Below, piece after piece: positions 5,767-48,018 of a stretch of DNA of 54,106 bases (position 1 is its first letter; each line of letters starts with the position of its first letter). This DNA comes from Octopus sinensis. Its lineage: Eukaryota. A model generated the notes under the pieces. The model did not search any database, had not been told where the DNA came from, and worked only from the letters and a program-made list of their open reading frames with translations. Both the position numbers and the translations under genes were made by a program. The stretch lies in contig NW_021833806.1 in the NCBI RefSeq assembly GCF_006345805.1, positions 1 through 54,106 of the forward strand, given 5' to 3'.

Positions 5767-6459
5767 ATGATGCGCGCGGGGTTTCTTGTGGTGTTCGAAG
5801 GCCCTGATAAAGTTGGAAAAACCACACAGTGCAAGCTCCTATACGAATCCCTAAATAAAATGGGGATTCCATCTAGATTAATGAAATTTCCAGGCAATGA
5901 TTGTTTGCTAATTCATTAGACCGGGAAACCAAGATAGGAAAATTAATAGACTCATATCTCAAATGTCAAATAGACTTGGACGATCACGCTGTACATCTTC
6001 TTTTTTCTGCAAATAGATGGGAACTTTAGTTTGTTATTTTTTTTATTTTTAGTAACGAAATGATCACTATTTTGTCTGAAGGAAAAATACTGATTCTAGA
6101 TCGTTATATTTACTCTGGAATTGCATATTCAGTGGCTAAGGTTTCATATATGAATTTAAAAATTTTTAGGGTTTGTCCCCAGAGTGGTGTAGTGCATGCG
6201 ATGTGGGACTCCCAGAACCTGACATTGTATTATACTTGGAGAAAAAAAATGTTATTTTTCCGAATAACAGTCATCATGAGAGATATGACAATCCTCTTTT
6301 TCAGGACAAAACTTCTTTTTGTTTCAAAAATCATTTTCCTGAGAATACGAAAGTTTGGAGATAGTAAATTTTTGATATTAGATTATTACCGTATGCGATG
6401 ATATTATGGAAACACATAAAATTATTCTCAATTTTGTCTTAGAAATGTCCAATATCTAA
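5767..6459 (+). CDS. DTYMK: Thymidylate kinase (dTMP kinase), 5 exons
   Basis: MMRAGFLVVFEGPDKVGKTTQ P-loop, LLFSANRWE, ILDRYIYSGIAYSVAKG and GLPEPDIVLYL. Introns 5894-5919 (GC-AG), 6029-6052, 6141-6169 and 6353-6381 keep the frame; TAA at 6457-6459. Confidence 0.95.
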
Positions 6460-6789
6460 TTCTCTTTTTTTACGTCTTTTAATAATTTTTTATATTAATA
6501 ATGTCGGTCTTTACAATGAGAAAGCATCTTTTAGTCAAATGTTTATCTTAATTAGTTTTCCCTGTACTTTTGTAAATCTAATATACTAAAAATAAGAAAT
6601 GATTAAGAGTTCCATATTTATTTAATATCGTGATTTATCAAATCAAGCGCAATGACAAGTGTAGCTAAAATTAAAAAATGAGTGGTTTCATGAAATTTTA
6701 TAGCGATTTTTGTACTATCGCTTATTTCAAAAATTTTTTTTTTAATGAAACAAGTTATTATCTTTGAAGCAAGAAAGAAATTAAAGATA

Positions 6790-7350
6790 GCTAAGTTAAT
6801 TAAAGGCCTCACGAGACACCCGACCAGCCTCGCAAATGGCGAAGCCGTTCCCTCAGATCACAGCAATCGACAGACGTTCCAGGAGCCAAGAAAACTCTCT
6901 TGGGTCGTGACTAGTCCTTGAAATCCGTCGACCGAGCGAGCGAAGGAAGCGGAGTGTCTTGGGACCGAAGATCCCGGAGGACTCCACGGCAATTGGAGTA
7001 AAGAGCAGCGAGTTGGAGAGGTGGCCGTACTTGAGAATCTTTCGCTCCTCGGCCTGCCTGGAAGCGTGCCCAGGATTGGCGGCGGACAGAGCGAGATTTC
7101 CCAGCGAGAACGTGTCCGAGCAGGTAGAATCCCAAATAAGGGATTTCCCCTGCTCGTAGGGGAAGGTGGACATGCCGTCAGGGCGTTTGCCATCCCCTCT
7201 ATCCAATCCAACAGGTTCAAGGATTGACGGGATGCCTGCTGAAGCGAGGGCTCTCTGTATGACTGAGTTGAGTTCACTGTGACGGGGGGCACGACCGGCA
7301 CTCCGCCGGCAAGCGAGGGGATGCAAACCGTACTCGTCAACAGTTCCCCC
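6790..7350 (-). mobile_element. 5'-truncated CRE-clade non-LTR element (REL endonuclease end)
   Basis: HPLACRRSAGRAPRHSELN..LEPVGLDRGDGKRPDG..LIWDSTCSDT..PIAVESSG..ERLSIAVI, the PD-(D/E)xK domain typical of CRE elements. Confidence 0.8.
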
Positions 7351-7575
7351 AATTTATTCATATTTTAATGATGATTAATAATGACTTTAAATCAATTACA
7401 TTAGTCCGACCCCCAAATGGGGCACCAAGTGCCCCAAAATGCGGGGTGCCCCAAAAACAGGGGTTGTTATTTTTTAAAAATTAACCCATTAATAAACATC
7501 AAAAAACATTTTTACTAAAATATTCAGTTATTTTCTTTTTATTTGTAGAGTTTTGTCTGATATTGTTCGTCAATT

Positions 7576-44785: not shown

Positions 44786-44885
44786 AATCAGCACAGGCAA
44801 ATCGGCTTGTCATTGTCAATATTCAGCTTCTCTAATTTTTTTTTAATTTTCTTCATCTCTTCTTAATTTATAAACGTAAATAGAG

Positions 44886-45300
44886 AGCTAAGCTAATTAA
44901 TGGCCTCACGGGACACCCGGCGTACTCGTCAACAGTTCCCCTACAGCGACATTTGTGTGTCTGGCAGTTTTTCAGCCTGACACGGAGGGAGATTGCGATT
45001 CTTAGGCATTCCTTGTCCACCAGGTTCCCGATGGAAGGGAAAGGGAGAGCCTTTAACCAGACACCGCTGCCTTCACAGTGACCTGCACAGAAACAAGCAA
45101 CACGGTATTAATTGGAGACAGGAAGGAGGCCTTCGAAAATTGTCTCACAAGAGATTTCGTCCCATTGACGCTGTACAGATTGAGAATTGGGCAGCTTCGA
45201 ACCAAACCGAGCCTCCCACCAACCACAGGCTGCAGAGTAATCTTCGCACAATTTCCGTTCGGGGAGGTTTCTAAGAACGATATTGTCCCGTGTAACGTCG
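44886..45300 (-). mobile_element. CRE-clade fragment of the same subfamily as 6790-7350, with the REL domain deleted
   Basis: QRQWD..SGVWLKALP..LRIAISLRV..HKCRCRGTVDEY is joined directly to the 3' end CGGGTGTCCCGTGAGGCC. Confidence 0.75.
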
Positions 45301-45375
45301 CAAATAATAAAACTAAAGTGATAACGGTTAAAGATAAATTATTGGCACTTATTAAGAAAATAATTAAAAAAACAA

Positions 45376-48018
45376 TCAAGAATCAGTGCTGTAATTAGGA
45401 TGCACGACAATGATCGGATCATCAGTGGCAACACCTCCATCTTCGTTCATATCAGAATGTGTCAACTGAATAAGAATATGATCCTAAACAGAATATCAAA
45501 TTCAGAAAATAACAGATTGAACAAGCCTTTCAATAAGTCTTTGCAACATGATTTTCCGTTCAGCAAGTTCCTCTTCCGTATCAATGTCCCCAATAATTTC
45601 TCCAAGGTACCAAGCATCAACTCAGATCGCTAATCCCCAAACTCATCTCCTGAGACAACTCTGCCAGTTCATCGACATGCCGAATATGAGTGACAAGTGC
45701 ATTAGTAATTTGTTTATATTCCTCATATGTAATAGAAATAGTCCGATAGCCTCCAGTTGTTGATGGGACAGAAGTCCGGTCTTACACTCAAGAAATAATG
45801 TAACCTGGGGATTGAACATTCATAGGAGTTTGAGGAGTCATTGGAATGTCCTCGGGAATAAAAAGTTCATCGGGACCTTCATGAAAGAGGATATCAGGGT
45901 GGTCCACTCTGATTATAGACTTGCTTATAAGTCGGCATGCTTCTTTAATATGACGAGGCTCAACCTAAGAAATAAAAAAAAGTGATAGAACCTCATCGCG
46001 AAGAAACATTCGTGCCATTGCTTCACTTAAGCGAATTATACTCTCTAACTGACGGACTGTAACACGCCAAGAAGTATTTCCACCAACAGCATCTCTCTGT
46101 CTCAAAAGCTTATATTGCTGGACAATATAATCTTGCGATTCTGGTGGAATTTTGGGGTTGAATTGACGTGAGAAAGCAATATATCTTCTTATATCTTCCA
46201 ATGCATATTTCCGATCAAAAATACTCAAATTAAGTGCATGAAGTTGGACTATTTTACTAGCAATGGCATAGTCTGTTATCTAAAATAAGTAAAAAACCCA
46301 ATCACCTCATTATATTCATCCACAAGTACAAAAAACAGATCAAAACGTGACATAATAGGGGCAGACATATTTACGTTACGTTTGAGTGATTTAGTACGGT
46401 CATAATGTCCTCCAAGTGGATTGGCCGCTGCGAGAATACAAGTCCGTGCGTTTAATGTTGCTTTAACACCTGCCTTGGCAATCGAAATAGTCTGTTGTTC
46501 CATTGCCTCATGAATCGCCACTTGATCGTGAGTTTCAATCTTGTCAAATTCATCAATACAACACACTCCCTACTCAATTAAAAGGACTGTCTACTCCGTC
46601 AGCTAGCATTAGTGCTCCTGCCTCGATTACTAGTTCCCCTGAATCTTCATCGCGGACAACTGCAGCTGTGAGTCCAGCAGCTGATGTCGATTTTCCGCTT
46701 GTATAAATAGCCCGTGTACTCAATTCCTCCACATGCCTACAACATATAATACAATTCATTACTTGAGAAGCTGGCTTTTTGCAGTACTGGGATCTCCCAC
46801 TACACAGACGTTCACATCTCCACGGAGACTTATTCCTTCCGAGGTTTGCTTACCAACTCCACCAAAAAGCATAAGTAAAATTCCACGCTTCACTTCGTCG
46901 TTTCCTTCTCAATTCAAACAAAACAATTCAACCGTGAATTGATGGGAAAAGACTAGAACAGAGGTTTTGATACAAATCTCGGTCGTTGTACATTTCTCTG
47001 ATTATTTCCTCACTGCAGTCTTCCAAAGCGACTCTATTCCTCGTCTTTACTGACGAAGCCAAAAAAGCAAGTCTGTAATTAAGATCTCGTACTCCCAAAG
47101 CCTTCAGTCCACGTACCCCTTCAACTTCATATGCTCTATTTCCAGTCATTCGAGTCGATGTTTCAGCTTTAGCTCCCGGTAGAGACAATACAGCCACGTC
47201 TGGCACAACAATAAGTGTTCCAATAAAATCACAACGGTCCCCTGCCTGGGCTAGTTCCACACAGTCTCCACGAAGGATCACTTCCAGACTACGAGGGATT
47301 GACCCACGAGGAAGTTCCGACTGAGTTTCTTGAATTCGGACTTTTTGAAAATCAATGAAGTGTGACTTATCAACATCAAGTATGAAACGCGTTCGATTAT
47401 TACAAACAGGATTTCGACAAATTGTGGGCTATATGTTTATATAATAATATTACTTGTGAGTATTTGAATTGTTGTTCTACATTTCTTATAAGAGTCTGGC
47501 ATTCAAAACAAATGAAGGCTCCTTTGACCAATTCTGGATGGACTGGATGTGTCCTGACTACCTGACCTGTTATTTTAATCAAAGAGCCAATTTTTCCACT
47601 GCTTAATTGCCTGATTTTTACAAAAGTTGGCACAAAATCAAAAGAAACAAAAAATTCCTTTTTCGAAGGAATTTTCCCTTTCTTGGAAAGTACATTTCCC
47701 ACACTTCCACATAAAAATGGGTATATTCTAGACTATATTAGAAAAAAAGTATACCTGTAGTACTCCTCTGTAATGGTAACAGCCAAGTGATGGTTCCAAG
47801 AGTCGATATCCGAGTAGTCAACGTTAAGAGTTGAACTTTCACTATTTAATAGTTTTTGGGCAGCGATTAAGTAAATTTCTTTTCCCTCGGAATTAATGAA
47901 CCTATTAGATATATTTTTAGTTTTTTTACTGTTCTATAAAATCTGAAAATAATAGTTGACAATTTTCTCCGATAATATCCTTTACTATGTTATCATTCTG
48001 CTGATTCAAAGCCTGCAT
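45376..48018 (-). CDS. MCM6: DNA replication licensing factor MCM6, 11 exons; at least one apparent frameshift near 45600-45650
   Basis: [91 protein letters not shown] and C-terminal VVHPNY. Introns 47902-47929, 47728-47754, 47429-47453, 46905-46932, 46737-46762, 46570-46594, 46280-46305, 45965-45991, 45781-45804 and 45484-45513. Confidence 0.96.

Follow-up and report, generated by a model that had tools for sequence, protein, structure and literature searches.

Which organism encodes protein genes whose introns are only about 26 nucleotides (nt) long, and does the splicing of such introns dictate where transposable elements accumulate? The question is raised by contig VCDQ01009503.1 of the Octopus sinensis assembly GCA_006345805.1, a stretch of 54,106 nt that we analyzed in full and refer to as the window. 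It contains three protein-coding genes, those for thymidylate kinase (DTYMK), selenophosphate synthetase (SPS) and MCM6, in which 19 introns can be delimited. Judged from its sequence, the contig is very probably nuclear DNA of a dicyemid, in which housekeeping genes kept under selection carry introns of 22–34 nt, the spacers are filled with transposons, and introns would be removed by normal U2-type, intron-definition splicing. It is best read as coming from Dicyema japonicum or a close relative, a parasite of the octopus renal sac, on the strength of its signature, its host and the exclusion of other sources. The combination of animal introns of about 26 nt with a repeat-rich genome is already published for dicyemids, and the locus adds an example rather than the phenomenon.

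Nineteen ultra-short introns in three genes

Gene models were rebuilt from the sequence and then checked against homologues. This procedure replaced a greedy, homology-free splice search, which had picked wrong introns of 40–65 nt. The original prediction, made from the letters of the window alone, had delimited 19 introns of 22–34 nt, and the rebuilt models reproduced every length and position exactly (Table 1). The median length is 26 nt (mean 26.7, standard deviation 2.9), and 16 of the 19 introns are shorter than 30 nt. Eighteen have GT-AG termini. The first intron of DTYMK has GC-AG termini, and shifting its border gives only still less canonical ends. The GC content of the introns is 0.22, compared with 0.36–0.43 in the exons. 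The terminal AG is preceded by T (position −3) in 16 introns, position −9 is most often A (12 of 19), and at +3 we count T ten times, A seven times and G twice. Lengths are distributed evenly modulo 3 (7, 6 and 6 introns), with no depletion of the 3n class. Together, the introns amount to 508 nt, or 0.9% of the window.

The spliced products of all three genes align to human proteins without gaps at any covered junction. MCM6, a product of 792 amino acids encoded in 2.6 kb, aligns end to end with human MCM6 (residues 12–789, 997 bits). SPS matches human SEPHS1 with 402 bits and is gap-free at its five junctions; DTYMK matches human thymidylate kinase (TMPK) with 153 bits and is gap-free across junctions 1–3. 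The fourth DTYMK junction lies outside the aligned part and is therefore the least secure of the 19. At the level of the sequence, the introns are confirmed as real and well above chance: ordinary GT-AG introns (once GC-AG), AT-rich and usually ending in TAG. The range of 22–34 nt holds for these 19 and not necessarily for every intron of the three genes, which probably hold 21 introns, one of them about twice the size of the others.

An in-frame stop codon is present in all six introns whose length is a multiple of three (6029–6052, 19114–19143, 47728–47754, 45965–45991, 45781–45804 and 45484–45513). Retention of any of the 19 introns would thus truncate the protein. The probability of finding stops in all 3n introns by chance, estimated from intron base composition, is about 0.03 on a very small sample (n = 6).

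Table 1. Genes, introns, candidate elements and repeats located in the window. Intron lengths (nt) are in brackets; minus-strand introns are given from donor to acceptor.
Feature	Position	Strand	Remarks
DTYMK (thymidylate kinase)	5767–6459	+	5 exons, 4 introns; stop TAA
DTYMK introns	5894–5919 (26, GC-AG), 6029–6052 (24), 6141–6169 (29), 6353–6381 (29)	+	
SPS (SEPHS2-type)	18555–19921	+	five confirmed introns; stop TAG
SPS introns	18805–18826 (22), 19114–19143 (30), 19251–19273 (23), 19465–19489 (25), 19703–19736 (34)	+	
SPS candidate first intron	18558–18623 (66) or 18561–18623 (63)	+	
SPS candidate extra intron	18925–18955 (31)	+	GT-AG; coincides with insert VIFWSFITF
SPS catalytic-site TGA	18708–18710	+	in frame, TELKG-TGA-GCKVPQ; aligns to Thr of human SEPHS1 LKGTGCKVPQ
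SPS second in-frame TGA	19024–19026	+	non-catalytic; Asn in human SEPHS1
Candidate SECIS hairpin	19952–20010	+	SPS 3′ untranslated region; GUGA/UGAU on opposite stem sides, AAA apical loop
MCM6	45376–48018	−	11 exons, 10 introns; stop TGA where orthologues end
MCM6 introns 1–5	47929–47902 (28), 47754–47728 (27), 47453–47429 (25), 46932–46905 (28), 46762–46737 (26)	−	
MCM6 introns 6–10	46594–46570 (25), 46305–46280 (26), 45991–45965 (27), 45804–45781 (24), 45513–45484 (30)	−	
MCM6 exon 10 frame break	45617–45631	−	two single bases (45617, 45631) missing relative to VCDQ01012064.1
U2 small nuclear RNA gene	52446–52635	+	Rfam RF00004, full length, 159 bits (gathering score 46)
Degenerate LINE fragment	215–2112	−	Pfam Exo_endo_phos_2 and Exo_endo_phos (endonuclease)
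LINE (endonuclease and reverse transcriptase)	15451–18371	+	Pfam Exo_endo_phos and RVT_1
LINE reverse-transcriptase fragment	23913–24882	+	Pfam RVT_1, 2.7e-15
Degenerate LINE	42247–44780	+	Pfam RVT_1; 3′ part 83% identical to VCDQ01002078.1
Pogo-type DNA transposon remnant	7579–8652	−	Pfam DDE_1 (2.3e-26) and HTH_Tnp_Tc5
Tc1/mariner element	36061–37523	−	Pfam HTH_Tnp_Tc3_2 and DDE_3; 191-nt inverted terminal repeats, TA target duplication
Pogo-like element, 1,058 nt	38131–39188	+	Pfam HTH_Tnp_Tc5 (1.1e-13); termini CAGTGCGACC, TA-flanked
Composite repeat	8953–11107	+	95-nt satellite array and PIF1-like helicase fragment (10711–10980)
Composite repeat, inverted copy	32360–34625	−	inverted relative to 8953–11107
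Recurrent unnamed open-reading-frame domain	6856–7353, 11341–11592, 21461–21688, 30973–31236, 44871–45107, 52666–53592		also in VCDQ01004456.1, 9652–10017 and 14409–14995

A second copy of the MCM6 region

A second, diverged copy of part of the window is present in the same assembly. Bases 1–12362 of contig VCDQ01012064.1 (72 kb) are colinear with window positions 49288–35559, at 98.5% identity across MCM6 and 93–97% elsewhere, in the spacers. All ten MCM6 introns have equal lengths in the two copies. Of their 266 nt, 10 are substituted (3.8%) and none is inserted or deleted, and the introns change in sequence at roughly the pace of synonymous sites. Across exons 1–8 (614 codons), we found 11 synonymous and no non-synonymous differences, which independently validates the reading frames and indicates a working gene. 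VCDQ01012064.1 may represent a second haplotype, a variant within the parasite population or a sibling species.

The comparison also bears on a frame break in exon 10 of the window, where VCDQ01012064.1 reads in one frame that matches human and octopus MCM6. The lesion is a pair of one-base deletions, probably introduced as long-read assembly errors. A 22-nt GT-AG ‘intron’ (45621–45600) would mend the frame and at the same time remove the conserved WYLGE motif; it is unnecessary, because the second copy shows that the window merely lacks two bases. VCDQ01012064.1 in turn carries its own 7-nt insertion in exon 9 (at about its positions 3370–3376), which looks like the product of an error-prone long-read assembly.

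Origin of the contig

The intron lengths in the window had been described in the original prediction as far below the usual animal minimum and as matching dicyemids, a statement in agreement with the literature (PMC6543705; PMC13644364). In Dicyema sp., the median intron is 27 bp and two thirds of introns are shorter than 30 bp (Zverkov et al., 2019, PMC6543705), compared with a median of 26 and 16 of 19 below 30 nt here; our sample comprises 19 introns from three genes, to which one probable intron of 63 or 66 nt has to be added. Among animals, such introns are published for D. japonicum and the myxobolids alone (Hadjez et al., 2026, PMC13644364). The figures taken from the description of the D. 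japonicum genome (Lu et al., 2019, PMC6736024; Ogino et al., 2010, cited there) are a mean intron of 38 bp, a GC content of 36.7%, 48.9% repeats, many copies of ORF2 of LINEs (long interspersed elements), and 5,012 genes in 67.5 Mb, or 13.5 kb per gene. The specimens sequenced were collected from O. sinensis. The window has a GC content of about 0.35, and its three genes span 8.7% of its length, one gene per 18 kb. As far as these published figures go, D. japonicum and the window thus share ultra-short introns, a GC content of about 36%, abundant LINEs, roughly half of the sequence in repeats, one gene per 13–18 kb, and the octopus host. The same figures bear out the earlier remark that tiny introns here accompany intergenic DNA rich in transposable elements, a pairing already reported for D. 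japonicum. The agreement of host, GC content, repeats and dicyemid intron median leads us to read the contig as dicyemid contamination.

The window differs from D. japonicum in being deposited under the name of the host, and in having a diverged haplotype with polymorphic transposon insertions, which we did not meet in the portions of the D. japonicum description considered here (PMC6736024). The comparison uses published figures, and the species may differ. In the literature available here, a search brought up no report that dicyemid DNA contaminates the O. sinensis assembly.

Two further contigs of the assembly resemble the window. In 21 kb compared, VCDQ01002078.1 (519 kb) has LINE, satellite and other repeat families in common with it, at 81–94% nucleotide identity. 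VCDQ01004456.1 (959 kb) carries a short-chain dehydrogenase (SDR) gene with introns at 2961–2987, 3129–3153 and 3406–3430 (27, 25 and 25 nt), whose product aligns to PDB entry 3p19 across all three junctions. By their sequence, both look dicyemid-derived. In genes neighboring the SDR gene, exons abut in shifting frames.

Several points qualify the assignment to dicyemids. It relies on signature, host and exclusion. The best spiralian match to MCM6 scores 1046 bits, compared with about 1000 for cnidarians and vertebrates, a small margin. The base at +3 is more often T (10 of 19) than A (7 of 19). In the splice-site logo published for D. japonicum, which is reduced to a 5′ ‘GTa’ and a bare 3′ ‘AG’, it is an A, but 19 introns are too few for a firm comparison with the logo. 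Finally, no branch-point motif is enriched in the introns: yTnAy occurs in 12 of 19, compared with 12.3 in shuffled sequences.

Could the contig nevertheless be genuine octopus DNA, either a block transferred from parasite to host or a divergent cluster of octopus paralogues? In favor of this view, the record is deposited within the O. sinensis assembly, where the NCBI annotation gives it an octopus ‘MCM6-like’ protein (XP_036355560.1). A protein search with MCM6 exon 4 led to an exact match that clusters with this entry, and the locus of the protein is identical to the reverse complement of window positions 43928–54106. O. sinensis has, however, its own MCM6, a canonical protein of 825 amino acids encoded on a 164.8-Mb scaffold and sharing a 90% cluster with its counterparts from O. 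bimaculoides and O. vulgaris; the MCM6 of the window is 59% identical to it. A protein search with the whole MCM6 returned no match closer than 61%, and molluscs, a brachiopod and an annelid lead at 58–60%. The window and its second copy are small unplaced contigs (54 and 72 kb) and diverged from one another, and three unrelated housekeeping genes under purifying selection all bear the dicyemid intron signature. Nor do the transposons behave like a family present in many copies in a large octopus genome: queried with the LINE reverse transcriptase, the protein search found a single ‘uncharacterized protein’ of O. sinensis at 73% identity, followed by matches of at most 47%. We consider an octopus origin very improbable.

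Another organism with tiny introns is just as hard to credit. Introns shorter than 30 nt also occur in myxobolid myxozoans, ciliates and microsporidia (PMC13644364), and apostome ciliates live in the renal sacs of cephalopods. The myxobolids resemble the window in their median intron length (22–27 bp), reduced splice-site motifs, canonical U2 small nuclear RNA and parasitism; they differ in being cnidarians of fish and annelids, usually with few transposons, whereas the window encodes spiralian-like proteins and has transposon-rich spacers (Hadjez et al., 2026, PMC13644364). In the list of MCM6 matches, cnidarians stand below spiralians. The source is an octopus assembly, and octopus is not among the myxobolid hosts. 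In ciliates such as Paramecium and Stentor (the latter cited in PMC13644364), introns likewise fall into a narrow length class near the splicing minimum. The in-frame stops in all 3n introns of the window recall the pattern of Paramecium, where it is linked to nonsense-mediated decay. Lengths of 3n are not depleted in the window (6 of 19), however, and TAA, TAG and TGA each end a reading frame where orthologues end, which excludes a ciliate-type code. The genes are metazoan, and the setting is rich in transposons of metazoan type, with LINEs that encode an apurinic/apyrimidinic-type endonuclease, Tc1/mariner and pogo elements. An MCM6 identity of about 60% to spiralians (58–60% to mollusc, brachiopod and annelid, 59% to octopus) is, in our judgment, too close for a protist or fungus.

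The least credible view, to which we give practically no chance, is that the ‘introns’ are frame-restoring gaps in pseudogenes or in an indel-ridden long-read assembly: lesions do exist (the two bases of MCM6 exon 10, an in-frame TGA in SPS, the 7-nt insertion of VCDQ01012064.1), but the introns have canonical termini in 19 of 19 cases, half the GC content of exons, lengths of 22–34 rather than 1–2 nt and gap-free junctions against three human proteins, and the second copy retains all those of MCM6 with 11 of 11 exon differences synonymous.

The selenophosphate synthetase gene

The SPS model needs a 5′ exon. The start is most likely the ATG at 18555–18557, followed by an intron of 63 or 66 nt; a GT occurs no closer to the acceptor than 56 nt. 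In the catalytic site, an in-frame TGA stands at the position of a threonine in human SEPHS1. We predict that this TGA encodes selenocysteine, in keeping with a selenocysteine enzyme; SEPHS2 carries selenocysteine at the matching catalytic position. Downstream of the stop codon, a hairpin folds with −30.8 kcal/mol (z = −3.2). It could be a divergent SECIS element, a candidate that is unconfirmed and comes from the predicted fold; the Rfam SECIS models gave no match at E ≤ 10.

Two features of the gene are irregular. The alignment to SEPHS1 contains a gap of nine amino acids at a hydrophobic insert, VIFWSFITF, that has no human counterpart. A 31-nt GT-AG segment coincides with the insert, and its excision shifts the frame. 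Our best guess, which is unproven, is a 31-nt intron together with one base missing from the adjacent run of G; a missing base is plausible because MCM6 carries such errors. A 48-nt in-frame intron (18925–18972) was rejected since it would remove a conserved block that aligns with GRIACA of the human protein, and a 27-nt in-frame excision was rejected for its non-canonical ends. The second irregularity is the non-catalytic TGA at 19024–19026, possibly an assembly error. For this TGA and for the 31-nt segment, the cause could be a mistake in the assembly, a genuine lesion or unusual decoding. Exact look-ups of two SPS exon reading frames, and of the LINE reading frame, gave no match.

Transposons and repeats between the genes

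The intergenic DNA had been called bloated with transposable elements, and only three genes had been recognized in the window; both statements stand. At least 42.6% of the window is recognizable transposon or repeat (22.5% with support from Pfam transposon domains), as against 8.7% for genes. A Pfam scan of unannotated open-reading-frame pieces of at least 35 amino acids on both strands found nothing credible and no further domain of a protein gene. The sole match, NGP1NT, scored 18 bits, below the cut-off of 27. The window contains no tRNA genes.

LINEs approach the genes closely. The element at 15451–18371 stops some 180 nt short of the SPS start codon and is 81.5% identical over 1.8 kb to a copy on VCDQ01002078.1. 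About 600 nt separate the end of the degenerate LINE at 42247–44780 from the MCM6 stop codon. Both the Tc1/mariner element and the 1,058-nt pogo-like element correspond to clean empty sites in VCDQ01012064.1. Their absence from the second copy, together with the TA flanks in the window, indicates recent transposition between genes.

A composite repeat about 2.2 kb long occurs twice, in opposite orientations, on either side of a 21-kb segment in which a LINE and the SPS gene are located. Each copy contains a satellite array of 9–10 units of 95 nt. The pair may be the remains of two Helitron-like elements or may mark both ends of some larger structure. At 29073–29222, internal to the contig, lies a 60-nt tandem repeat of 2.5 copies whose unit starts with degenerate, telomere-like TAACCC hexamers. 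A recurrent open-reading-frame domain without a Pfam match shows the motifs RPDG...WD.TC.D.F, then AE..K..KY, then VET.G. In VCDQ01004456.1 it adjoins a reverse-transcriptase reading frame; the domain presumably belongs to an unclassified retroelement abundant in this genome.

Does splicing limit intron length?

In the mechanism we propose from the sequence, introns would be removed by the normal U2-dependent spliceosome, which would pair splice sites across the intron (intron definition), and selection would hold intron length near its physical minimum. In genes under purifying selection (DTYMK, the selenocysteine-type SPS and MCM6), introns would have shrunk to 22–34 nt. Transposons would persist only where insertion breaks no gene, which with 25-nt introns means between genes, and the spacers would have been filled by LINEs, Tc1/mariner and pogo elements and satellites, some of them recently mobile. 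It is plausible, as the original prediction proposed, that a strict intron-definition spliceosome caps intron length, so that transposons would be confined to intergenic DNA and intron size would be uncoupled from genome size. A stricter version seems unlikely to us: a ruler-like upper limit of splicing, under which any transposon landing in an intron would kill the gene, forcing repeats into intergenic DNA and mechanically uncoupling intron size from genome size.

The two haplotype contigs are compatible with a ruler-like limit, as intron lengths are frozen while sequence drifts, and transposon differences are found only between genes. The absence of transposons from introns nevertheless says little, because introns make up less than 1% of the window; by target size, a rough count gives an expectation of about 0.14 of some 15 fragments. 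Aligned intergenic blocks of the two copies show approximately one gap opening per 100 nt, so that about 2.9 gaps would be expected in the 266 nt of MCM6 introns and none is observed (P ≈ 0.055). Some of the intergenic gaps are probably sequencing errors. The invariance of MCM6 intron length is thus only suggestive as a sign of constraint.

It is a serious possibility, slightly short of being probable, that no special cap exists and that tiny introns are a legacy of deletion bias or of selection for compact transcripts. The transposon-rich spacers would then be due to weak selection, the parasite population being small, and introns would be a negligible target, insertions into genes being purged like other knock-outs. 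The very small intron target fits such an account. The likely first SPS intron of 63 or 66 nt argues against an absolute cap near 34 nt, as does the published intron mean of 38 bp, which exceeds the median of 27 bp (PMC6736024; PMC6543705, as far as the figures given there go); one dicyemid intron in three reaches 30 bp or more. The very narrow length distribution (standard deviation 2.9 nt) and the equal lengths of ten MCM6 introns despite 3.8% substitutions speak, if weakly, for a limit.

The U2 small nuclear RNA encoded near the end of the window is canonical and gives no sign of an altered machine. The branch-point-binding GUAGUA box (GUGUAGUA) and the Sm site are intact. Relative to the Rfam consensus, one extra A stands right before the box. 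The gene directly adjoins copies of the unnamed retroelement domain, from 52666 onward.

Consequences for the octopus assembly

What is new here is that the contig is mislabeled: parasite DNA, in two haplotypes, would reside in the reference assembly of its host. We have seen at least four such contigs, up to 0.96 Mb in size, in the O. sinensis assembly. Under the dicyemid reading, RefSeq and UniProt carry parasite proteins under an octopus name, for example XP_036355560.1, ‘MCM6-like’. This entry is a 233-amino-acid fragment with a gene model of about 6 kb (46928–52941, minus strand), compared with the 792 amino acids that the gene actually encodes in 2.6 kb. The standard annotation pipeline evidently failed to model 25-nt introns here. 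These contigs could mislead comparative work on the gene families and transposons of cephalopods or on possible horizontal transfer. At the same time, the two diverged haplotypes offer ready material on the constraint of intron length and the tolerance of transposable elements, which may be tested genome-wide.

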